From the NCBI GenBank assembly GCA_001179505.1, contig CDMY01000870.1:1-14260 (forward strand): a DNA stretch of 14,260 bases, given 5' to 3'. How positions within the stretch are numbered: the first letter of the stretch is position 1; each line of letters starts with the position of its first letter. Below, piece by piece: positions 1-14,260 of the stretch. The DNA comes from Vitrella brassicaformis CCMP3155. Taxonomy: Eukaryota; Protista; Chromerida. Under the pieces are notes generated by a model. That model ran no database searches. It saw nothing but the letters and a program-made list of their open reading frames with translations, and was not told the origin of the DNA. The translations under genes were made by a program, and so were the position numbers.

Positions 1-96
1 AGCTTTGCCCCCACAAGGCCTGATAGCTGAGTTCGTGGAATGACTCGGAGTATAGCGGTCTGTAACCATTTCCGACGTCTGGGGACACATTCGTCC

Positions 97-174
97 ATGT
101 CTTCAGCAATTCAGGGTAGAGTCTTTCTCTCCCTTTTTTGCCTTTGCCTCTCCCCATCTCTCCTGCCGACAGCA
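97..174 (+). other. Putative N-terminal signal peptide (MSSAIQGRVFLSLFCLCLSPSLLPTA)
   Basis: Basic residue, then hydrophobic core FLSLFCLCL, then small residues. It fits the extracellular location expected for peroxidase and DOMON domains. The same bases could instead be a 57-nt GT-AG intron (116-172). Confidence 0.5.
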
Positions 175-3100
175 TGCCAATCCAATCAGAAGAACGGCAT
201 CGATAGCAAAACGCCGCTTGCTTCACTCCCTGGTCACCCCTATTGTCGTAAGGCAGGGCTGCATTCTTATTTGCCCTCTGGCGAGATGCGGGATGACTTG
301 CCGCCTGCTAGTGAGGTGGCGAAACAGGTAAAGGATTACTGATGCGCTCATGGCGCGTATACGGATGTTCATGATATGTGTACGTGTAGCGTGCATGCTG
401 CTTCTTCTCTTTGTTTGTGCATACAGGCCTTCAGCTCTCTGCCAGCTCCGCTGGACACATCAGCTTCGACTCTTCTCTACGCATGGGGCCAGTTCATTAT
501 TTCACACATTTCCCAGTCAAGAAAGGCACACGACGAACAAATCGGTTTGGCCTTCCCTACCCGTCACTCTCCCTCATATGCCGCCAACTGCTCTTCTTTT
601 TCAGGTACCTCTTTCTTCCGCAGTGCCTATACGGTCATTGAGGGCATCAGACATCCGATAAATCGCAAGAGTGTGTTTATAGATGGGTCATCTCTCTATG
701 GAGAAAATGAGAAACAGAGAAGGACGGTGAGAGAGGGAAAGGGAGGTAGGGTAAGATTGGATAGCAGCGGCTTGCCTGAGGGAGAGGGGAAGGAGAAGGA
801 TGAATGTCGGCATTTTGCCTTTGCGGATCCTTTGTTGAATCTTCATCCGCTGCTAAGCGTCTTTGCTATTGGTGAGTACACACACGTAGTACACGTTGAT
901 ATGCATACCCGTACATACTGAAAAAAGAAATACAAGAGTGAGCTCTGTTTTGTCCTTCATTCGCTTTTGCGTAACGCACATGCGAATCAATGTATGCGTG
1001 CATATCTATTTGTGTCTTTACCTATATCCAGTTCTCCTTCGCGAGCACAATCGCTATGCAGCCGTACTGGCTTTGCGTCATCCTCAGTGGTCGGATGATG
1101 ACATCTTTTACGAAGCGAAAGCATGGATTGTGGCACTCATGCAGAAGATTACACTCGAACAGGTGGCGAGAAAAGTGTTTCGACCTACACTGTACCTGTC
1201 TCTACGCATGTTGCTGTTTCATAATTATGCATGCTCTGGGGCAAATGTGCATATGGATGTATACATGAATGTACACTATGTATCCTTATGTGTGTCGTTT
1301 CAGTATTTGCCGGTCCTCCTTGGACATCCGTTGCCTCCCTATCGAGGCCATGACCCAGCCATCGATCCTTCAATTGACGTCTTCGTAGCATCCACTGTAT
1401 TTAGGTATATACACGCATGTACGGCAAGACGGATGTACATATATATATGGTCGACAGCTCGTCTTGGTTTTCAGGTATGGCCCTTTCATTATTCCTCCTC
1501 TTATTCACCTTTACGACCCAATTACCCTCAAGCCACACCCACTCGGTATGCACCATTTTGCATCTTAGCTATACATATACATACGCTACATGCACATACA
1601 CACACATATGGTACCAGATATATACAAACATGTCCACATGTAGGCCCCATCCCCCTCTCCTCCACCATCTGCCACCCCTATACTCTGCGATCAATCAACG
1701 TCGAGCCCTTCATATTTGGAGCACTCCTACAGGCGGCAGCACTCATGCGAGGAAGAATGAATACAGGTGGCGTGATTGTCAAGGCAGATAAACACTCTAT
1801 CCGATGCATGCATGCGAACACGTAATGTGTATGCCTCTAATGATGCGTGGAATGTTTTTTGTACCTCCATGCAGATATCCGTCACACGCCTCCCCCTTCC
1901 TCCTGCAACGACACCTCTAACTGTGCATTCGACCTCGCAGCAGTCGATGTGCTGAGGGGAAGAGACTGGGGCGTAGGTAAGTCTGTTGTCGTAGATGGTC
2001 AGATTGTCCCTTCCCTACATACGTATCTCACTCATCGCGCAAAAGAATACGTAAATCCTTTGTGCTTTCGATGGATTTCCACCTCTGTGTCTATTTCATC
2101 GTCAGGCTTCTATAATGATGTGCGGCAGAGCTATGAATTATCGAGAGTGGAGAGTTTTAGGGAATTTGGTGAGATGGGTGACGTGTTGGAAGAGGTGTAT
2201 GGTGATGTTGACAGGATAGAGGCTTATGTGGGAGCGAATTTAGGTGAAAGGGGGGTGTGGGAGATATTGACAGATCTTGTTAATTAGTGAAAATATGCGT
2301 CTGTAGTAGCAAATATGTGCTTGAGTATTATCCATGCCTTTCCTTTTTTGGCTCCATGCAGAAATGCTGCGTCATTCTCCCTCTGTCGAAAGTCATGGCG
2401 TCCTTCCGCCTCTTGACAAAGCAGCTACACATGACACTTTTCAGAAAATAAGACATGCAGATCCAAGGTGAGAGGCATAGAGAAGGCCATGAATCTTGAT
2501 ACTTGTCCAACCATGTATTGTGCGTCAGATGGTTTGAGAATTATCTGTCTTATTTCGACAGCTTCCGTACGAACATCGCTTCCTCTCCCCCTCCTCCTCC
2601 CTCCTTTCCATTCAAAGATGTCGAACTCGCTAAGCAGCTCGTTTCAGTATCTCTTGCAGACGTCTTGATGTGGAATACGCGCCTCTGTCGTTATATCCCG
2701 AGTAACCCATTCCGCTTCTCCCCTGAAGAGGTCTTCTCCAACATTTATGTTTCATCCCCTCTTTCTCCCTTCTTCGCCCCGTCGCCCTTATATGCGCAAT
2801 GTGACGATACTTACCATAAAGTAAAGGGAGGGAAAGAAGAAAATGACGATCCTTCCGTACGTACAATGCAACTATGTGAGGGCGATCTGTTGATTCGGTG
2901 GAAAGTTACTGATATGACTGATGAGATTGACTTTGAACTGAGAGGGCGCACGACAGGTGAGTCGGCACACATATACATATACACATGGATTTCTTCTCCT
3001 TCATATGTACATGTGTCTATCCATCCACCAGGTTGGGTAGGTATCGGCTTCTCGTCAAACGGCCGTATGCACGACTCAACACTCCTCATCGCCCACAATC

Positions 3101-6100
3101 TCCACAACCAAACCAGTATACCAATCGTCCAAGCCTATCGAGCAGGAAGCGACCGTCTACCTCGCTTAGATGACGAGCGGTCGAAGGCAATACGTGTGAT
3201 GGAAGGGAGAGAGGAAGAAGGATGGACTACTGTGAGGTTTGCCGTAAGATTGGGCGATATAGGCATCGACATTAGCGGAGAGGAAAGAAAGACCACGTGG
3301 TTCTTGGGTGCTGTTGGGCCGGATGGGAAGAAGGGTCTGTGTGAGGGAGAGGTGAGTGAGACGGGATGGATGGAAGGAAAGACGTACAAAGGAATGTATA
3401 TATACGCAGAGAGGGGGATATTGGTGCTTACATTGCATGCACTGTATTTAGCTGTAAATCATCTTTCGAGCTCTCTCTCTCTATATATGTGTGGGTGCCT
3501 GCAGGATGCCTACCACCAAGGCAAACGGCAATCAGTCCAAGTGGACTTTATACGAGGAAGGGGCACTATCACTGCTAACGACTATCGACCTGTGATGTGG
3601 GTTCACGGGGCGATCATGTGGGTGGCGGCAACTTTCCTTCTGCCGTTAGCCGTGTGTATATCGAGATATTTCAAGCATACGAAGTGGTAGGAGGGATATT
3701 TACGGAGTGAGGGACCTTTACACATATATATCACAAAAAGATACGTACAGACAATGGACGACATATGTATACATTGATTGTTTTCTCTCATATATACATT
3801 CATGTGCATCTCTTTTCTCAGGTGGTTGTCAGCCCACGAACGTATCGGAATTACCCTAGCAGGCAACATGGTTGGCCTAGTATTTACCGCCATCGCCGAA
3901 AAGAACGCACGAATTGCTACCGTTCATGGGGTGGTCGGTCTTGGATTGGCTGCTATGGTGCTTTTCCTGCTGGTCTCGGGCTTCATTAACCGGAAGTGGC
4001 AGGCCTTGGTAGGTTGGTCGACGGACAACACGAGAGATGTATACGTGTATACGTACGTCCATGTGTATGCATACAGATGCACATGCATATATATATATAT
4101 GTCTATACATACGCATATATACAGATGTACGTGAACACAGGCGGATGGACATATACATAGAACCATCACTGTCCTCACAGGCCTCCAAAAGGATCGTCAG
4201 CCGTCAGACATTCAGACTCTTCCGTTGTCTTCACGCATTCATGGGCAAAGCTCTCTTATTCGGTGCTTTCGGGAGCTCCATCCGAGGTATGTGCTCTACT
4301 TTTTCTACATACACCTTAGTGCGTATTCGTTTGTCACCTCTGAGTTAATCCTTGTTTTTTGACATGTAGGCTGCATGCTTCTCTTTCCCACGACTCCGTG
4401 GGTCTGGCAGGCTCAACTGGCCCTATGTGTAGTAATTTGCGTCGTCATATGTCCGTTAGAAGTGAGACGGCGTTATCCGAGGATGTTTTGTAGTATCTGT
4501 CATGCGCTGCCGCGGGGAATGCAGGTATGTAAGAAGGGAGGTGGGAGCTTTCCTATATCTGACTATACACTATGCAGATACGTGCGCGCATGTGTATATC
4601 TATGTTGCAGATGGGCATTCTCACTCCCTTGGACCTCAGCTATGTGTCCTCTCTTTCCCACAACACTGACCCAGGCCCTAAATCTTCATACCTCAAGCAG
4701 TGTTTTAAGTGGCTCTGCTTCGGTATATATGCATATTATCGCATGAAAAGAACACCGATTTATCTTTGGTTCCGATTCATCTTTGGCTCATCTCTCCTCT
4801 CCTTTGTCACAACAGATAGGAAGGGCCCTCGTTCGATCCGTGCAGCAGAACGGCTGTTCACGTATGATGAAGTGTGTGATGCGGTAGAGAAAGGGGGTCA
4901 GTGGGTGGCTGTCATAGATGGTGTGTATGATGTGAAGGGATTCTTGGGAGCACATCCGGGTAAGATAATGAAGGGGGCAAGGATTTGATATTGCAACTAT
5001 TTGTAAATGGATGGATGAGCTGTGCTTGGTATGTGTGCGTTCGGTACGTGTGTGCTGTGACAGGTGGGAGTGCTTTAATCGAAAGGCATATTGGCTGTGA
5101 TATCACGTTTCTGTTTCTGGGGTATGCGTATGTACGTATGTATGTATGTACGAATCTATGTAAAGCAATACCTCATGAAATACCCGTATTGTATTGCGGC
5201 AGCCTGGAGGAGTCCAGGAGGAATTTTTTGCCACAGAGACGTACATCGACTATGACCGCTACATCATGGACCTTCCTAAGGAGACGGTCATTGCGTAAGC
5301 TAATATTTACATGCTTCTAATGTCCTCATCTTATTGCATACATGTTTATTGCATCTGTCTGCACACATACTTAGTTAGACCTCCCCAGCCTGACACAGTT
5401 GCACCTCCGAAGTCCAATATAGCACCGTCATCTTTACGGTCGTCTTCTCCATTACCCATCAGCAATCAACTTGGTACGCCATCGCACATAATGGAGGACA
5501 TCAAGATGCCCTTTCATAATGTCAAGTTGGTTTTTGCAGATACACTGGACCCGACAAGAACTGGGAGGACACACAGTGTGTTTGCTGCCTACACGCTGAA
5601 AGGATACAGGTATGTAGAGTCGTATGGATGTTATGTAGGCATATGCATATATACAACTGCAAGGACAGATATGTATGTATCTCTCTGTGACTGTCTGTGT
5701 ATAGAGTTGGCACCTTGATCACTTCCAGTAGCCCATACGATGAACGCAACGAGCTAGACCTCTCTTTTACACCGCCTCCCTCCTACTACGCACAACGCAC
5801 TTTCTGTCTCAATGTCAAACAGAGAGATGCTCTCACTGTCTTGACAAATAACAGACTCTCTTCAATCCGCTCGTCATCCGATCGACTTCCGAAGAAGGCC
5901 GATACGATATTGTTTCCAGAGACAAATGAGGATAAGGCAGAGGGCAAGGCAGACAAGAGAGTCATTGCGGGGTAAGCTGGTGAGAAAGAGGCATCTATTC
6001 ATGTATACATAAGTCTCACTATACATGAATACCTTCGTGGGTCACTGATATTATTCTCCTCTACTTTTCTTCTGTTTCCTTTGCCTTTTACAGGTTATAC

Positions 6101-7432
6101 CAGGAGATGCACGTGGTAGAGAACGTCATGCTGAGTCGATGTGCGAAGCGAGACAAGGGCCTTCTACCCGTCCACCGCCTGACGCTCGAAAGCTTAGTGC
6201 CTCTTGCCGTGCACTCATATCGACCAGGTGAGAAAACACATACAACATACAAACATGTCCTTCGTATGTATGTATATATGCTATTCCTTCACCTTTCAGG
6301 CATGCACGTGGAGGTTCTAGAAGATATCGATGGTCGTCGCTTAAAACGTTCCTATAGCGTTGCGTCCTCTCCCACCCCCCATCGCTTAAGCCTCCTCTTC
6401 AAAGTCTACCCTACCGCAGGACGGGGCATGTCCCAGACACTATCCAACGTGCGTCCAGGTGATACCATTCGTGTGAGAGGCTTCAAAGGACCGGATCTTC
6501 TTGAGGGCGCGCCCCTTCTGCCCTCTACCATCGAGAACAAGACCATGTGGCACGAGTTTTGGCCGTATTGTGGTGTGATAGTCGGAGGGACTGGTATTGT
6601 TGCTTTGCTGAACTTCATAAGGCATCAGGAGCATGCGCTGAAGGCTCTTAGAGACAACCCAGCGATTGATACATCTGGGACGGAAATGGGGTTGATTTTC
6701 GCGGCCAAGGATATGGATGAGGCAAAGGTAGGTATGACATAAGTGTACATATATGCACATATATTCCAATCAATATGTTACGTCGCTTACATTCGCTTAC
6801 GTGTACGTCTGCGTACTTGCATATATGATTGCGTTCAGGCGCTTGGCTGGGATGAGGTTTGTGAGCTGAAGAGGGGGCTGGCCATGAAGAAAAACGGCGT
6901 ATCGCATTACATGCATGGGCGACTGATGCTGTCTCGGGTCGGCTATGAACTATCCGGTGATTCCCCAGACGTCCCGGAAGGAGACAATGATGTTCGAGTG
7001 GGCATCATAGATTCTTTCACGCTCAAGGAGGGCATCCCCTTCCTCCATGCATTGGCTGAGATAGCGAAGCAAAGTAAGCCAGAGATCCACGGAAGTGTCG
7101 AAGTGACGGCGAGAGAAGCATCTTCGGATACCATGCATTTCTCGACTCCAGGAAATCGGTTGTCGACCGATGGGGAGCAAGATATACGGACGCTTCCGAA
7201 CATAGATACGTCCATGAATTTAGAGGACTCCATGCCATCGAGCAACATGCCTTTCAAGTCCAACCACTTGGACAAATCCATCCATACAACGAGTGAGAGA
7301 TGGCAGTCTGGGAAGCCGACGCTCAGAACGTCCCGTATTTTTATCTGTGGGCCGCAGTCGTTCAGAGATGGAATGTGGTTGGTTCTTGAGGAATTGGGCA
7401 TTCCGACGGAATGCCTACGATTCCTTGAGTGA
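97..7432 (+). CDS. Multi-exon membrane redox fusion protein (about 1629 aa): peroxidase-like / DOMON / cytochrome b561 / cytochrome b5 / FAD-NAD(P)H oxidoreductase
   Basis: Hand-spliced exons, all joins GT-AG and phase-compatible: 97-327, 427-871, 1032-1162, 1304-1404, 1475-1545, 1644-1766, 1875-1976, 2106-2243, 2362-2467, 2529-2956, 3032-3351, 3505-3686, 3822-4008, 4181-4286, 4370-4524, 4611-4722, 4816-4959, 5064-5121, 5203-5294, 5375-5609, 5705-5971, 6094-6227, 6300-6727, 6839-7432 (TGA). Total 4890 nt with no internal stop. Family motifs are rebuilt across junctions (e.g. VLLREHNR, ITLEQ|YLPVLLG, DPR|WFEN, HPG|G, KGYR|VGTL). The 5' end is uncertain: an alternative uses ATG 40 with an intron at 116-172 and gives the same length. 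Confidence 0.9.
193..2715 (+). other. Animal heme peroxidase (An_peroxidase / peroxidase-cyclooxygenase superfamily)-like domain, non-canonical active site
   Basis: Motifs WGQFI, INRKSVFIDGSSLYG, LLREHNRYA..L...HPQWSDDDIFYEAK, QKITLEQYLPVLLG, DLAAVDVLRGRDWG, YNDVR, LEEVYGDVDRIEAYVG, DPRWFEN, SLADVL..NT....SNPF. Confidence 0.9.
2866..3558 (+). other. DOMON domain, heme-binding type
   Basis: LLIRWKV..DEIDFELRGRTTGWVGIGFS.NGRM, TTVRF, WFLGAVG, YHQGKR. Candidate heme ligands Met (3067-3069) and His (3514-3516) are both present. Confidence 0.85.
3590..4470 (+). other. Cytochrome b561 (CYBDOM-type) transmembrane domain, five hydrophobic helices
   Basis: Four His ligands in the expected contexts: VHGAIM (3604), WLSAHERIG (3835), TVHGVVG (3925), RCLHAFMGK (4232). 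A fifth helix follows (AQLALCVVICVVICPLEV). Confidence 0.85.
4850..5720 (+). other. Cytochrome b5-like heme-binding domain with a large internal insertion
   Basis: FTYDEV...WVAVIDGVYDVKGFLGAHPGGSALIERHIGCDITFLFLG, then THSVFAAYTLKGYRVGTL. His ligands at 4953 and 5572. Confidence 0.85.
6094..7432 (+). other. FNR-family (cytochrome b5 reductase-like) FAD-binding and NAD(P)H-binding domains
   Basis: RSYSVAS (6347), FKVYP..G.GMS, VRGFKG, VIVGGTGI (6584), IFICGP (7337-7354), LEELGIP. Confidence 0.9.
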
Positions 7433-7859
7433 TTAATGCTATGTGTGTATGTGTATCCTCTGCTTACGGTTCCAACCGTGTCTTCAAGTACGGTTTTTTT
7501 ATGTGTGTCGAACAACGATAAGTCACGGCGCTCATAGACTTTGGGGCAGATTGGGTGACAGACGAGGCTCTTTGTCAGGCGAGCGTGCGCTTGTTAGTTC
7601 CTTTCTATTTCCAGCCACTATTTCTTAGACTTCCTTCCTTTGTCGGCTTTCTTTCGCGCTGCTGTCAACAGGACTCTTCACTCTTACGATCTGACAGTCC
7701 CTAATGGCTGTCTCCATATTGTGATATAGACATCGCGCCCTAACTCTAGATCTCGATTCCCGCAAGACGTCTATACCACTGAATGCTTGTGGGCGGTGGC
7801 TTTGATAGTATCTACACGCATCGATAGAGGATAGGCAGGAGGGGAAGCTGTTGAGCCGT

Positions 7860-8900
7860 TCAGTCGTTAAGTGATTGTCTGCCTGCCTTCCTGGCTAGGT
7901 ATACACCCATCCGGTTGCCCCTGAATGGCGTGGTGTATCGTGCAAGTCTGTTCGACCTGCTGCGTAGCTTACTGTCGCCTACCTGTTTGTCCTGGGTGTC
8001 GTTGAGCATTTGAACGGACACATGCGCACACTTGATATTGAGTCGATAGGTGTGATGCGCCGGGGTCCACACACGTGTTGGTCCACGGCACGAAGAAACG
8101 AACAGGCGGGAACAGTCGATCATAATGAAACGTGCAAACACTCGAGAGGCGAACCAGCAGAGCTCCATGACTAGCATACGTGAATGCAACGGACGGCCAT
8201 GTAGTATCATGTGGTGCACCGTGCCAAGCGAAGAAATGAAGGCGGCATACTTGAGTGCACATACTCATTTCGTGAAGCACTGTCGATGGCTCGTCCGAGA
8301 GGTTTGTCGGACAAATAATGTTCCCGGTTGCTCGAGAGCAGAGTGATGACCAAGCCAATAATTCACAAAGTGAATGAGAGTCTCTGCCTTTGGCAAAAGC
8401 TCTGTTATCCTCAACGCCTTTTCTGTTAGCGTTGCGCTGTCTCCGTTAACACAGTGGATTCGTCTTCGCATGGAGTTCCTCCTCTAACTGACTTTGCGAG
8501 CTTGAGTGCACAACTCGACGGGGTTGATGGACCTATGCATAGACAAGGGAACAGAGACGTATATATGCAAATGGACGAGGTATCATGACGGTGGGAACTG
8601 AGTTCATCTAATGATGTCCACTCATCTAGTCGCAGTCCTCTCCCTCTCATCACCATGCCGGCTACCCGAGCACCACCTTTCCCATTGCAAAACGCTCGTG
8701 CAGCTCTACCGAATGAGGGAAAACACGGCCAAACCACTCGATCACGTCACAGCAGTGGCAGTTGGTGCACATCTTGCCCTTTTTGAAGCAGGGACAGCCT
8801 CGCTTCTCTCCCTTCCTCTTGCATCTCGATCCAGTCGCTTTGTTCTTCTTCAGTAGTCTTATACAAGGGATTTCTGATACTCGCTTCGCTCGCATCAAAG
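7860..8900 (-). pseudogene. Degenerate ORF remnants including a CXC/CRC-like cysteine cluster; possibly transposon-derived
   Basis: RCKRKGEKRGCPCFKKGKMCTNCHCCD at 8823-8746. A possible acceptor near 8535 is followed by a mostly open frame (…TEKALRITELLPKAETLIHFVNYWLGHH…). There are several stops and no recognisable catalytic motif. Confidence 0.35.
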
Positions 8901-9004
8901 ATCCCTTATAGGGGAGGGTTTGAAGGGTCAAGGGTTTCAAACCCAGAAGAAAGCAAGAGAGAGAAGCGAGCATCAGAAAACCCATTGTTTAGACGGTGTG
9001 TCAT

Positions 9005-9195
9005 ACTGGCCAAGAGCCAAGCAAGCACGCACGTGTCAGTCAGTAAGCAAGCACGCATTGCGTCCCGTCCGCTCTTTCCCTTACGCAAGCCGACAAAACA
9101 CTAAACAAGCAAGCAAACACGCACTACACTGCTTGTCTGCCCTCCCTTATGCACGCAAACATCAGTCAATCAGTCAACAGGTAGGTAGGTAGCGG
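9005..9195. repeat. Low-complexity (GCAA/GCAC/CAGT/GGTA)n tract with a degenerate internal duplication
   Basis: AAGCAAGCACGCA…TCCCTTACGCAAGC recurs imperfectly as AAGCAAGCAAACACGCA…TCCCTTATGCACGCAAAC. Confidence 0.5.
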
Positions 9196-9262
9196 ACAAA
9201 CACATGCATCGATTGCTTGCCCTTCCTCCCTTTCTTCCGCATTAGTCCTCGTTCTTCTCCCT

Positions 9263-10460
9263 TCATCTACTGAATGCTGGTCCTCTCAATGAGACTGTCC
9301 AGACCTCTTCAGTGTCTGTGTCATGCATCACACGGTCCTCCAATGAAAAGTCTGTCAGTTCAGGTTCTTCTCCATTGCGAATTGCCCCAAAAATCTCTTC
9401 ACATTGTCGCCATGAGAGATGGCGAATATTGATGGGGGTCGAAAGGCGTTGACGAAATGTTGGGTTGAAAATGCAAAAAAGGAAGCAGGCTAGTCGTAAT
9501 TGGCATCGGTGCCCGTTCCTCTGAAAAGGTCCCATAGACAAAACCGAATGGGGACTGTAGAACAAATGCTATTTTCTTCCTTCTGCATCCACATATGTTG
9601 CTGGACTTGAATGAGCACCACATCGGTAGGGCAGGTTTGGTATTGCAGATGAAAGCAAGGGATTAACCTGCGATTTGCTTGCTTGTACTTAGAGGCTTCC
9701 CAGAGATCACGGTTGCCCTTTCGTGGTAGTCACGTTAAACAGATTCGGGAGAACCACTCTCCCCATGTAAGAAAGTGTGCAATAAAACAACACACGTTCA
9801 TTTCGTTTTTGTCTTTCTTTGCCACTAGTGAGTATCTTGGTGGCTCGAAAACTATACGGGCAAACAGCCGGTGTGTCACTGTGTCGATGTATGAGTGCCT
9901 CCCTGTGCTGCAGCTGCTCGAAATAAGCAAGAGCTTCGTGATCCGTTCGATCGTTCTTCTTGTCCCGAGCTCCTAGTGATGCCCATAGGTAACATCATCT
10001 AGGCTGGAAAGAACCAGTTCATCGCCCTCGACATGGTATCTCAGTCTACTACTTGTCAGTCGCCTCTTTTCATATTATGTTTAGCATTTTCCCACACGAA
10101 TTCAGGTGTAATTTGGCTTTTTGACCGAGCAAAGATTGTTTTGAGGTGGTCTTAAGCGTGCCACCTGCAACATTAATTGAACAGAGATGACAGATGAAAA
10201 GAAATGATAGCTAGAGCGACTCTTGCGCCTCACCAGAACCGTATAAGGACACGATTTCCGAAATCAATAGCAGCTCTGAAATATTCACGAGGAGAAAGAG
10301 CCCTCACCAGCCTCAAGAAGGTGGGAATTGTCTCATTGAAAACAATCTCGTCCTTGGCCTTGAATTCCTCTCATATAGCATAGAAGCTCACGTGGAGGGA
10401 GCGGTTAACTGACGGTCGCAGTGGCCATTCGGCCTCGTCTGAGTCTAGGTGGCTACCTAC
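9263..10460 (-). pseudogene. Degenerate intron-containing coding remnant, family not recognised
   Basis: One frame from about 9995 to 9263 (about 245 codons) has only 3 internal stops (…DHEALAYFEQLQHREALIHRH…RHLSWRQCEEIFGAIRNGEEPELTDFSLEDRVMHD…). Upstream are protein-like segments (EEFKAKDEIVFNETIPTFLRLVRALSPREYFRAAIDFGNRVLIRF; DHLKTIFARSKSQITPEFVWENAKHNMKRGD) separated by a GTGAG…TTGCAG intron-like stretch. Confidence 0.45.
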
Positions 10461-10548
10461 GCATGCAAGCACGGCACAGAGACAGTGCAAGCACAGAGTA
10501 CGGTAAGTCCCTTTGCAAAACAAGCACCAGTGGCAACCCATGCTCACC

Positions 10549-10915
10549 TTGTTGTCGATTGATTTAGTGCGACACCGTGCACGAATGTCCACCATCGTCC
10601 ACACAAGCTATCGATACATATCTGTGCACAAAGCGTTCGAGTCACTCATCCGAGAAGATCCCCGCCCCATCCATAACCCGAACACTACGCCATGACTGCC
10701 TCCCGCCACGCAGACAAAGACTAGCAGCCCGCACCAACGCGACAGACAGACGAGGACGCAACCAACACTGTACACGTGCCTGCCCTCTGTCTGACCACCC
10801 CTGCCTTGTCACCAGCTGCTCGGTCAGGCGAGTGAGGAAGTGCTCAGCCTCTCTCCCCCACACCGTGACGACCGGGGGGTGAAGGTGACTGACAGATTCT
10901 CGCATTGTTGTCGAT
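10549..10915. repeat. Target-site duplication TTGTTGTCGAT at 10549-10559 and 10905-10915
   Basis: Exact 11-bp direct repeat read directly from the sequence, bracketing the retrotransposon fragment. Confidence 0.85.
10560..10904 (-). mobile_element. 5'-truncated CRE-like (restriction-like endonuclease class) non-LTR retrotransposon fragment
   Basis: Encodes CENLSVTFTP[frameshift]VVTVWGREAEHFLTRLTEQLVTRQGWSDRGQARVQCWLRPRLSVALVRAASLCLRGGR…DE*, matching the C-terminal pattern of CRE-clade ORFs (FTP.V….G.EA..F..RL……W.R.R.S….RA…C.RG.R). About 80 nt of 3' UTR follows. Flanked by an exact 11-bp direct repeat. Confidence 0.8.
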
Positions 10916-11049
10916 CGGCAGACACAGCAGCGGCTACGCATGCGCAGGGAGGTACATACACACTTTGACTGCATGCAAATCACCCGGTGTACCGTTGATG
11001 GGGGTGGTTAAGAAGCCTGTCAGATGGAGAGCCTGAAGGCGTCCAAATC

Positions 11050-13410
11050 GTGAGATGCCTTTTTTGGAAAAGGGTCGCTTCGCCTTTCTTCTCTCATCCT
11101 TCTGCCCTCTTCACTCTGAAGTCAGCGCCTCGCCTCTGTACTGTGTCATGTCACCTACGTGTCAGACAGACCTTGTGTGTGAGTGTGGGCGACAATGCTT
11201 TCGACGTGGCGCGCTCGGGCTTGTTCTGTTTGATAAATGGTGTCTTTGACAATGAATTCGTTACCACTGATTTGTTCTGACGCGCGACAAGTTTCACACA
11301 CTCTTCCTGCCGCTTCGTCATTTGACGGCTGCATCGCATTGGCCATGAGGAGACAGAGGTCTGCAGCTATAGATGACACGAAAAGTGAGATACATCATTC
11401 AACGCGCCGCACCATCTCACAACTGACTTTGCATTCATTGCAAGCTGGATCGAATCAATAATCGTTGATGACTTCTCGCTCTAAACCCCCGAAGGCTCAT
11501 CGGGGGCTGCCTGGATTATCAATCCCGTACCCCGATAAAGACATTCCATTCGCTGGCGATCTCCTTGGGAGGGCCACAATCAAGCTGGCAGGACCGTACA
11601 AAGTCGCAAGGCATGCAAGCTGAGAGACACACTCATTGGGAGCATACATGGTTCCCTTTCTCGTGTCAGAAAGGTGCTGCCTCTCAAGAGACCCAGCGAT
11701 TCGTCCAGTCGGTGGCCCATTTTAACCAAGAAGAAGCACTGTGACTTATGTAGCTGTCGTGTATCTGACAAAGTCCCTCGACAATCGGTCTGACCTGGTC
11801 CTCCTCGCTCAGAAGGCTTCCGCGACCAGAATGCTCGCAAGTCAATTGACTTCCAGCTAGAAAACTACAATGTCAATGTCACTGTGTATAGGGTGAGTGT
11901 GAAAGCCATTCGATCGTCGCATTAAGCGTCCATTTGTCGCAGCTTTACGTGCTTGAAAGCATTAGGAGATGACCGGAGTGATCAACTTACCCCTCGATGG
12001 CCACACACGAGTTTCGCCTGCTGGTAGGTAACCGGAATGTGATAGTCGCACCATCATTCTTGGCCATCGAGTGCAGTTGGGGCGCTAGCAGAACCGGTGT
12101 GTCTCGCATTGCGGTTGACGTCACTTGCCAAGAAGAGAATCTAGAGTTCTACATGCTACAAAGTAAGGCCATTTCCTACGTCTCTCCGTCCTCAAGACTG
12201 AAAGCTGAGGCATTTTTCACAGGACGGAAGAGAAGACAGGTTGCGTGATAGACGGACAGCACCGATGGGTCTGATGTTGTGTGTATTGACTTGCAGCAGT
12301 TTGAGGCTCAAATGGCCATGCTGAGACCGAAACCGGCCCGGTACCGAAGAAGCCGGCCATCTTGCCTTAAGAGCCTGGCTCAAGACCCAGCAGAACTGTA
12401 GGGACAAAACAACAAAGAACAGCAGGTATTGGCTATCTTTGCTCATCTCCTTGGTTGATCTGGCTGAGATGCCCGGTCCACAAAGCTGATGCGTGAGACG
12501 AATCAATTGATGAGTTCTATGTCTACGTCAGAGAGAGCAGAAGGGCATGGGCAGCAGAGGTTCAGCTCTATGACACACAGAACGGACAACTCGGAGGAGA
12601 GGTGAAGAATACGATACACGACTGTATGCATGTTTCTCTCTCTCTCTGCAGGTAGTGCTTTAGGTGGACATATTGTGCTCTCTCGAAATAGTCAACTGGT
12701 CTTTGGAGATGAACAGACAAGCTCTAAGCGAATCCCTCACGGTTGGATGCTTGGCTCTGCAAGTCAGTCTCTCTCTCTCTCTCACTAAATGTGTCTCTTT
12801 GCTCGCTGCCCATGCGTCGGCGTGTTTGGTAGCACCTGTGTGCTAAAGCGCTGGGCACACCAAGGAAGGACCATGCTGTCGTGGTGATTAAGTAAGACAT
12901 AAGCGATCTGAGGCCAGAAGGCTACCCTTTGTGTGCCTGCTTGTGTGTAGGGAGGTGTGGATTCCCTAAGCATCTATCGTCGCTCGATCTGCCTCTCGAT
13001 AGACGTCAAGAGAGATGTCCACAAATTCAATTGGCCTGTGCTCCTAAAACGCTCGGCGGACCGCGATTGTGAGTGTAAGTAACTCTTCAAAAGGCTCTCT
13101 ATATCCGATCTGGTATAAGCAGACGCAAAGAAGCACGCAAACTTGACGTCACGTGTGTTCTTCGTGTATGTGTGTCATGTGCCAGGGATAAAGAAATCAC
13201 GGTGTTGGTTCAAGGCTCCAGCCAGCATCTTTCTCAAGGCGGAGGGACCGACCGGTGATGCCCGACAGCAAGCTGAAGAATCTAGCCGAAGGTGACTGCT
13301 ATCTGACTCTGTGTTTTTGCATTAATACAGAACCTATCCCTATGCGCAGCGTGTTTCATATGTTCGACAGAGTGTTCATGTGCACTCTGAAGTGTTTCCT
13401 CCCTCCCAGA
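11050..13410 (+). pseudogene. Multi-exon decayed gene of unrecognised family
   Basis: One frame runs 11050-11892 with 7 stops in about 280 codons. It continues in phase through GT-AG introns at 11893-11942, (12163-12222), 12240-12296, 12602-12651, 12763-12832, 12892-12950, 13075-13185 and 13292-13330. Protein-like exons include ATHEFRLLVGNRNVIVAPSFLAIECSWG, DESIDEFYVYVRESRRAWAAEVQLYDTQ, VDILCSLEIVNWSLEMNRQALSESL and IDVKRDVHKFNWPVLLKRSADRDCE|WIKKSRCWFKAPASIFLK. At least two frameshifts are needed. The true start is unknown. Confidence 0.6.
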
Positions 13411-13520
13411 CACACAGATATTCAGCATATCCACACACTCCAAGTCCACGCGTGCATGCGCAGGTTTGCGCATAGAGATGTTTATCATATAGCCACACAG
13501 TCCAAGTCCACGCGTGCATG
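13411..13520 (-). repeat. Inverted, diverged copies (about 1.6 units) of the downstream minisatellite
   Basis: The reverse complement reads CATGCACGCGTGGACTTGGACTGTGTGGCTATATGATAAACATCTCTATGCGCAAACCTGCGCATGCACGCGTGGACTTGGAGTGTGTGGATATGCTGAATATCTGTGTG. It aligns to the forward unit, best to the variant at about 14040-14100. Confidence 0.85.
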
Positions 13521-13530
13521 AAATGATGAA

Positions 13531-14260
13531 TTCTCTGTGCGCACACCTGCGCATGCTCGTGTCGACTTGGAGTGTGTGTGTATATGAATGACTGTGTGCG
13601 CACGCCGCTCGTGTTCTGTGTGCGCACACCTGCGCATGCTCGTGTCGACTTGGAGTGTGTATATATGATGAACGAATGTCTCCCCGTGTGCGCACATCTG
13701 CGCATGCTCGTGTCGACTCGGAGTGTGTGTGTATATGAATGACCGTGTGCGCACACCTGCGCATGCTCGTGTCCTGTGTGCGCACACCTGCGCATGCTCG
13801 TGTCGACTTGGAGTGTGTATATATGATGAACGAATGTCTCCCTGTGTGCGCACATCTGCGCATGCTCGTGTCGACTCGGAGTGTGTGTGTATATGAATGA
13901 CTGTGTGCGCACACCTGCGCATGCTCGTGTCCTGTGTGTGCACACTTGCGCATGCTCGTGTCGACTTGGAGCGTATATATGATGAATGTCTCCGCGCATG
14001 CTCGTGTCGACTCGGAGTGTGTGTGTATATGAATGTCTGTGTGTGCACGCCTGCGCATGCACATTTGGACTTGGACTGTGTGTATATGATGAATGTCTCT
14101 GTGTGCGCACATCTGCGCATGCTCGTGTCGACTCGGAGAGGTGTGCGCATGCTCGTGTCGACTCGGAGTGTGTATATATGATGAATGTCTCCCTGTGTGC
14201 GCACACCTGCGCATGCTCGTGTCGACTCGGAGTGTGTGTGTATATGAATGACTGTGTGCG
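13531..14260 (+). repeat. Minisatellite array (31/59/68-bp units on a shared 31-bp core) with a 158-bp higher-order repeat; runs off the window end
   Basis: The core CTGTGTGCGCACACCTGCGCATGCTCGTGTC repeats about 14 times, followed by tail A (GACTCGGAGTGTGTGTGTATATGAATGA), tail B (GACTTGGAGTGTGTATATATGATGAACGAATGTCTCC) or no tail. Tail B starts at 13647, 13805 and 13963, i.e. 158 bp apart. Confidence 0.95.

Follow-up and report, generated by a model that had tools for sequence, protein, structure and literature searches.

We analysed a 14,260-nucleotide (nt) stretch of DNA from the alveolate alga Vitrella brassicaformis CCMP3155 (contig CDMY01000870.1, positions 1 to 14,260 of the forward strand, hereafter the window), which is nuclear DNA of an intron-rich eukaryote. 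At 97-7432 its forward strand bears a gene of 25 exons, whose product joins five modules in one chain: a peroxidase-like domain, a DOMON domain, a cytochrome b561 core, a cytochrome b5 and a b5-reductase-type module (FNR) for flavin adenine dinucleotide (FAD) and reduced nicotinamide adenine dinucleotide (phosphate), NAD(P)H. Every intron is of the GT-AG type, and the spliced frame comprises 4827 nt and 1608 codons with a lone stop at 7430-7432. Stop-free pieces were joined via GT-AG introns and the resulting model was then corrected by RNA contigs; the basis of the coding region is the GT-AG model together with RNA joints, depth arithmetic and a collinear profile match. The exons are as follows.

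Exons 1-13, forward strand: 97-327, 427-871, 1032-1162, 1304-1404, 1475-1545, 1644-1766, 1875-1976, 2106-2243, 2362-2467, 2529-2956, 3032-3351, 3505-3686, 3822-4008
Exons 14-25, forward strand: 4181-4286, 4370-4524, 4611-4722, 4816-4959, 5064-5294, 5375-5473, 5540-5609, 5705-5971, 6094-6227, 6300-6727, 6839-7073, 7152-7432

RNA contigs of four public runs (X1, X2, X7 and X8) were compared with 1470-7460, and transcription and correct splicing were seen in all four; about 0.6 of the 31-mers of 2300-7500 are present in these runs, which is the share expected for spliced RNA. Fifteen joints (written here as last letter of one exon/first letter of the next) were listed directly by the contigs, all of them GT..AG and at the predicted sites, namely those from 1545/1644 through 4959/5064 plus 5971/6094 and 6227/6300. 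Seven further joints lie outside this direct list, and the rest were recovered from piece coordinates and from the number of letters implied by the ratio of bin depth to contig depth, a ratio that reproduces known exons to 3 letters or fewer per 200-letter bin. Five joints were placed by piece coordinates and bin depths.

5294/5375, forward strand: joint of exons 18 and 19
5473/5540, forward strand: joint of exons 19 and 20
5609/5705, forward strand: joint of exons 20 and 21
6727/6839, forward strand: joint of exons 23 and 24
7073/7152, forward strand: joint of exons 24 and 25

By the depth arithmetic, 5064-5294 is one exon, exons 19 and 20 are 5375-5473 and 5540-5609, and 7074-7151 is an additional in-frame intron; enumeration of GT-AG chains in 5064-5704 gave too many solutions to decide. 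A 24-exon model of 1631 amino acids, in which 5132-5202 was spliced out, 5203-5294 was read in a different frame and 5474-5539 and 7074-7151 were coding, was ruled out by the RNA piece coordinates and bin depths. Exons 1-4 precede the RNA-compared stretch and are based on splice consensus, frame, a loose end at 1473 and the profile alignment. Overlapping contigs run from about exon 1 to past the stop and thereby connect the modules in RNA, and two module boundaries fall inside exons: exon 10 (2529-2956) contains both the C-terminus of the peroxidase-like domain and the start of DOMON, and exon 12 spans the passage from DOMON to b561. The start codon of the model is putative; another in-frame ATG, at 40, precedes the one at 97 by 19 codons, and the X1 contig appears to begin near 110. 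An earlier reading of the letters alone (the sequence-only reading) had described a single spliced frame, one transcript and five modules in this order, which the 1608-codon frame and the linking contigs bear out. Its exon list probably departed from ours in 5064-5609 and 6839-7432, where RNA gives one longer exon and two extra in-frame introns.

The modules were located by Pfam, hydropathy and alignment with relatives (described below). On the stop-free pieces of 343-7429, the Pfam order on the forward strand was An_peroxidase (three pieces; E 2e-12, 3e-17 and 3e-8), DOMON, Cyt-b5 and FAD_binding_6.

97-177, forward strand: signal-like hydrophobic segment, residues 1-27 (hydropathy peak at residues 9-27)
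364-2700, forward strand: peroxidase-like ectodomain, residues ~90-540, exons 2-10 (Pfam An_peroxidase on three pieces)
2872-3560, forward strand: DOMON, residues ~596-750, exons 10-12 (Pfam DOMON E 1.6e-11)
3580-4460, forward strand: cytochrome b561 five-helix core, residues ~760-921, exons 12-15 (hydropathy and the His columns of relatives)
4816-5740, forward strand: cytochrome b5, residues ~990-1170, exons 17-21 (Pfam Cyt-b5 E 4e-4, first half only)
6094-7432, forward strand: b5-reductase-type FAD/NAD module, residues ~1250-1608 (Pfam FAD_binding_6 E 3e-7)

The DOMON haem ligands M638 (3058-3078) and H736 (3505-3528) stand in columns that are conserved in the alignment with relatives, and the pair corresponds to M90/H174 of the Arabidopsis CYBDOM protein HYP1 (PMC10784544). 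In the b561 core, H766, H798, H828 and H873 are invariant in those relatives whose corresponding region matches Pfam Cytochrom_B561, and they sit on the first four of five hydrophobic helices, a layout that agrees with HYP1 (PMC10784544). Judged from helix positions, H766/H828 would be the outer pair and H798/H873 the cytosolic pair; basic residues adjoin both H798 and H873. Hydropathy gives five membrane segments within residues 767-920, and together with the signal-like N-terminus these five helices would place the peroxidase-like domain and DOMON outside and the b5/FNR part inside, in agreement with the arrangement predicted by the sequence-only reading.

The two b5 His are H1026 (in HPGG) and H1149 (in THS), with a loop insertion of ~95 residues between them, and relatives carry insertions at the same place. 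GRTHSVFAAYTLKGYRVGTL of the Vitrella b5 aligns with the HxHSxFA...L...V motif of the relatives, and the segment around H1149 has the canonical form THS...A...L....VG.L; this family alignment refuted two other assignments, according to which the second b5 His was either absent or the His of IPHE in an optional 27-residue segment. The FAD/NAD module has R1311-S-Y-S (RSYS), GRGMSQT, GGTGIVA and CGP; its NAD lobe contains a low-complexity insertion, and its top PDB matches are NADH-cytochrome b5 reductases (E 1.5e-5). All ligands and motifs named by the sequence-only reading, namely the FAD/NAD motifs, two b5 His, four b561 His and the DOMON Met/His pair, were thus located in the alignment. The six-helix haem domain Ferric_reduct, FAD_binding_8, NAD_binding_6 and EF-hands gave no Pfam match in the window pieces, and EF-hands left no trace in the family profile either.

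The peroxidase-like ectodomain is degenerate. In bacterial, protist and some fungal relatives the alignment shows GQFxDHD, GDxRxNE and FRYGHS, at which positions the Vitrella protein has GQFIISH, ADPLLNL and FRYGPF, respectively.

487-510, forward strand: distal site QFIISHI, with the distal His replaced by Ser103 and a His one place further on
820-849, forward strand: catalytic Arg replaced by L213 and ester-link (covalent-link) Glu by L216 (alignment with relatives)
1400-1487, forward strand: proximal His replaced by P306 in FRYGPF (alignment with relatives)

The catalytic signature of animal haem peroxidases (distal Gln-x-x-Asp-His, Arg and proximal His, and in many of them a Glu/Asp ester link) is accordingly absent from the Vitrella domain, and a phmmer search of exon 2 against PDB returned merely marginal peroxidase matches. 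The proximal His is kept in 23/23 five-module relatives checked, with Pro in the Vitrella protein only. RNA equals genome at FRYGPF, and there are no letter differences from 1470 on. Because all four key residues are lost and RNA agrees with the genome, no usual peroxidase haem is expected in the Vitrella copy; from its residues, an ordinary peroxidase haem appears very unlikely. The chain of 'up to four haems' in the sequence-only reading cannot extend to a peroxidase haem in this copy, as the domain is devoid of haem ligands. Partial loss of this kind also occurs among relatives: those of Glomeromycotina (P0039, P0043 and others) keep the proximal His, have Met, Phe or Leu for the distal His and lack the catalytic Arg, whereas chytrid relatives have the complete set of peroxidase residues. 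By analogy with the peroxidase-homology domain of DUOX, the ectodomain of the Vitrella copy is probably a structural, binding or regulatory module.

The relatives were reached in several steps. With 2530-3687 as query, an exhaustive run of HMMER returned 18 weak matches to distant DOMON proteins, none with the complete five-module architecture; the sole one with peroxidase and DOMON, plus a b561-like region, was the fragment P0015. A word-indexed search with 2500-3687 was blank, which reflects its length filter and how far DOMON has diverged. P0015 led to a haptophyte contig, a TIR-tailed Prymnesium protein and a Jimgerdemannia protein, and the Jimgerdemannia query led to the five-module set. 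Precomputed Pfam lists contain dozens of proteins of 1.2-1.6 thousand amino acids with PF03098, PF03351, PF00173, PF00970, PF00175 and sometimes PF03188, from Rhizophagus, Gigaspora, Diversispora, Funneliformis, Paraglomus, Entrophospora, Actinomortierella, Powellomyces, Terramyces, Synchytrium and Rhizophlyctis, most of them auto-named 'heme peroxidase'. The groups represented are Glomeromycotina, Mortierellomycotina, Endogonales, chytrids and eukaryotic contigs (for instance, Rhizophagus irregularis P0043, Paraglomus occultum P0060, Powellomyces hirtus P0070, Synchytrium microbalum P0093 and the environmental contig P0134). An ESM Atlas cluster named 'Heme peroxidase family protein' (179 members, 1490 amino acids) combines An_peroxidase, Cyt-b5 and DOMON, and one five-module relative matches it at 0.98.

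A Pfam scan of four relatives gave An_peroxidase, DOMON, Cytochrom_B561, Cyt-b5, FAD_binding_6 and NAD_binding_1 in the same order as in Vitrella, and in each module phmmer matched the Vitrella model collinearly to relatives. A profile of 23 five-module relatives spans Vitrella residues 90-1429 as one stretch (E 5e-157), with the C-terminal CGP region matched too. The ligands of DOMON (Met/His), b561 (four His) and b5 (the His of HPGG and of HS), the FAD motif RxY(S/T) and the NAD motifs GGTG and CGP are all conserved in Vitrella and relatives, and in many relatives, too, the b5 is interrupted by a loop insertion and a low-complexity insertion precedes CGP. What sets the Vitrella protein apart is an identity of only ~25-30% and its host, an alveolate alga. 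In a tree from a quick search it falls within a clade of SH-aLRT 98 that contains all five-module rows, on a very long branch that joins another long branch (P0019), which makes the placement suggestive only.

These results leave us in very little doubt about family membership or about the gene model. We regard the gene as a new member, and a degenerate one, of a family that is known in databases and unstudied; the lost proximal His does not remove it from the family, in which this His is a conserved feature and not a formal definition. The sequence-only reading had anticipated that similar uncharacterised architectures might already be in databases, as they are, and the rarity it attached to this exact order is not upheld, since many fungi and protists have it. 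Its description of the protein as a DUOX analogue holds for the wire and the analogy, with parts unrelated to the DUOX/NOX core, whereas recent independent assembly in this lineage is contradicted by the same order in many fungi and protists and by the collinear alignment.

Partial variants of the scaffold were also found, which share the DOMON-b561 core or the logic of DOMON plus a reductase and differ by the cytosolic tail or by absence of the peroxidase. Diphylleia rotans P0073 has the first three modules only (peroxidase-DOMON-b561). The haptophyte (Prymnesium) P0019 and contig L001 (1-3994) have peroxidase-DOMON-b561 followed by a cytosolic TIR domain instead of b5/FNR, which is an unusual coupling of a redox ectodomain with a TIR domain. 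A ciliate ESM Atlas cluster (995 amino acids, mostly Ciliophora) has DOMON, Cyt-b5 and FAD_binding_6 without peroxidase, and from this chain the NAD(P)H-fed DOMON wire may be the older unit. P0017 (1770 amino acids) has six DOMON repeats ahead of a Ferric_reduct/FAD_binding_8/NAD_binding_6 core and is a DOMON-NOX/FRE fusion; DOMON-FRE fusions have been described (PMC3591440). The differing tails and the missing peroxidase among these variants indicate that the scaffold is modular.

Among characterised systems, CYBDOM proteins offer one close comparison. HYP1 has been shown experimentally to move electrons across the plasma membrane, from cytosolic ascorbate over a path of three b haems, and to reduce Fe(III)/Cu(II) chelates outside (PMC10784544). 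The Vitrella protein shares with HYP1 and CRR a signal peptide, an extracellular Met/His DOMON and a five-helix b561 with two His pairs, the signal and topology being predictions in its case. CYBDOM proteins use free cytosolic ascorbate, whereas in the Vitrella protein the cytosolic end is fused to a b5 and an NAD(P)H flavoreductase, and a peroxidase-like domain is fused ahead of DOMON; the fused b5/FNR suggests a donor other than ascorbate. With DUOX it shares a single chain in which an N-terminal extracellular peroxidase-homology domain, degenerate for haem, is combined with trans-membrane haems and an FAD/NAD(P)H module in the cytosol, but the parts are unrelated: Ferric_reduct/FAD_binding_8/NAD_binding_6 plus EF-hands in DUOX, b561/b5/FAD_binding_6/NAD_binding_1 in Vitrella.

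Ncb5or/CYB5R4 and the C-terminal half of nitrate reductase resemble the Vitrella protein in having b5 and then FAD_binding_6/NAD_binding_1 in one chain. They are soluble, whereas the Vitrella protein is membrane-anchored, has a large b5 loop insertion and would have the fused membrane cytochrome as acceptor. Of the features that mark Ncb5or/CYB5R4 (b5, CS, b5 reductase, solubility), the Vitrella protein has b5 and the reductase; a CS domain of the Ncb5or type was considered, and the linker pieces between b5 and reductase gave no Pfam match to it.

We lean, if only slightly, towards the interpretation that this five-helix protein of the uncharacterised peroxidase-DOMON-b561-b5-FNR family works as a trans-membrane electron chain fed by NAD(P)H. 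For the donor, the direction and end point of electron flow and the acceptor, we infer the following route, for which the modules supply every station and which would run downhill throughout. Cytosolic NAD(P)H would reduce the FAD of the C-terminal b5-reductase-type module, and the FAD would reduce the haem of the fused b5. The b5 haem, in place of ascorbate, would be the donor to the cytosolic b561 haem (H798/H873), from which electrons would cross to the outer b561 haem (H766/H828); the DOMON haem (M638/H736) would receive them next. The DOMON haem would then reduce a one-electron acceptor on the outside, in a manner comparable to CYBDOM ferric reductases; examples of such an acceptor are Fe(III)/Cu(II) chelates, radicals and a partner enzyme. 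Since the chain of the Vitrella copy would end at the DOMON haem, a role as an external reductase is our best guess; in relatives with intact catalytic residues, the chain may feed the peroxidase haem instead. The haems of b5, b561 and DOMON have near-zero to positive midpoint potentials, far above that of O2/superoxide, whereas those of NOX are strongly negative. With such positive potentials of b561 and DOMON, O2, which the sequence-only reading had listed among the acceptors, is unlikely in that role.

Several observations weigh against a working chain of this kind. Hydropathy is the sole source of the topology, and the fourth helix has a weak score (1.43). A literature search found no paper on the peroxidase-DOMON-b561-b5-FNR combination and no biochemical data for any family member. 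The Vitrella branch has a length of 2.43 against a median of 0.63. In addition, the RNA has two irregularities that interrupt the frame, listed here with a third that keeps it.

2827-2828, forward strand: 8-nt insertion GAGGGAAA behind 2827, in RNA contigs X2 and X7 only and absent from X1, X8 and the genome
4960-5063, forward strand: intron 17, partly retained in all four runs, as estimated from depth and not by direct counting
5122-5202, forward strand: 81-nt in-frame segment for 27 residues of the b5 loop insertion, holding a 16-nt tandem repeat

Lying between the peroxidase-like domain and DOMON, the insertion causes a frameshift and brings a stop at codon 607. Intron 17 appears to be kept in about 30-45% of the RNA depth, which would give a stop at codon 1037, just past HPG and ahead of the second b5 His. 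The 5' contig ends 2 letters beyond 4959, a short separate contig has the 4959/5064 joint at about half depth, and there is excess depth in the bin 4870-5069; the bin depths need a third contig over intron 17, which points to its retention. The segment 5122-5202 is kept in the X1 and X2 contigs, which are unbroken from 5063 to 5294; the X7 contig begins at 5202, and the segment is probably, on weak indications, spliced out in part of X7. The insertion, the retention of intron 17 and the long branch allow relaxed constraint or regulated shorter products.

The first of the alternatives is that the gene is a decaying or neo-functionalised paralog, perhaps no longer encoding a full chain. Besides the frameshifting insertion of X2 and X7, the retained intron 17 and the very long branch just described, the loss of four key peroxidase residues, as opposed to a proximal His in 23/23 relatives, speaks for it. 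We nevertheless consider it unlikely, because the reference carries an unbroken frame of 1608 codons through its 25 exons, all ligands of the other four modules are conserved, and the gene is transcribed and properly spliced in four runs. Glomeromycotina relatives are also without distal His and Arg, which indicates that a non-catalytic ectodomain is tolerated in the family.

The insertion also bears on a second alternative, in which some strains or alleles make two products: a secreted haem-less peroxidase-like protein of 606 residues, made by itself or alongside a DOMON-b561-b5-FNR protein that has its own start and no signal peptide. In X2 and X7, GAGGGAAA has the full depth of the contig, and M596 is the next in-frame Met for such a start. 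The absence of the insertion from the genome window and from the X1 and X8 contigs, and the fusion of both parts in relatives, make this distinctly improbable; moreover, DOMON would lie on the wrong side in a downstream product that has no signal peptide.

A DUOX/NOX-like oxidase that turns external O2 into superoxide/H2O2, with the product handled by the peroxidase-like domain, would share the overall logic of a peroxidase-like domain outside, haems in the membrane and a flavin/NAD(P)H module in the cytosol and has a parallel in known DOMON-NOX/FRE fusions such as P0017, but it is highly improbable given a b561 membrane core instead of a ferric-reductase domain, a flavin module of the b5-reductase type, haem potentials of b5, b561 and DOMON that are in general too high relative to O2/superoxide, and a peroxidase-like domain without haem ligands.

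As for the surroundings of the gene, the X2 and X7 contigs extend 1.4 and 2.7 kb past the stop (7433-10200), and this RNA could be a long 3' untranslated region, read-through or an overlapping transcript. Open reading frames in 7.8-12.5 kb gave no Pfam match. A tandem array at 13536-14240, with a 158-bp period and sub-periods of 24-92 bp and rich in TGCGCA/CATGC, yields long spurious open reading frames on the minus strand.

The locus alone adds little that is new, the architecture being already in public databases. The five-module architecture occurs widely among early fungi, the arbuscular-mycorrhizal ones included, and among several groups of protists, and the Vitrella copy extends the range of the family to an alveolate alga. 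We offer tentatively, as a possibility somewhat short of an even chance, that the family is the first b561 system driven by NAD(P)H via a fused b5/b5-reductase, that is, a self-sufficient wire of four haems and one flavin; its members with intact peroxidase would be trans-membrane NAD(P)H peroxidases that remove or use external H2O2, and the Vitrella wire would end at DOMON as a reductase of metals or of a partner enzyme. Known b561/CYBDOM proteins need free ascorbate, and NOX, DUOX and FRE have another membrane core. If the proposed chain is true, the conduit from NAD(P)H through b5 to b561-DOMON would be a third, independently built route that exports reducing power, and the Vitrella copy, as a natural variant with a haem-less ectodomain, would help to distinguish what the peroxidase domain does from what the wire does.

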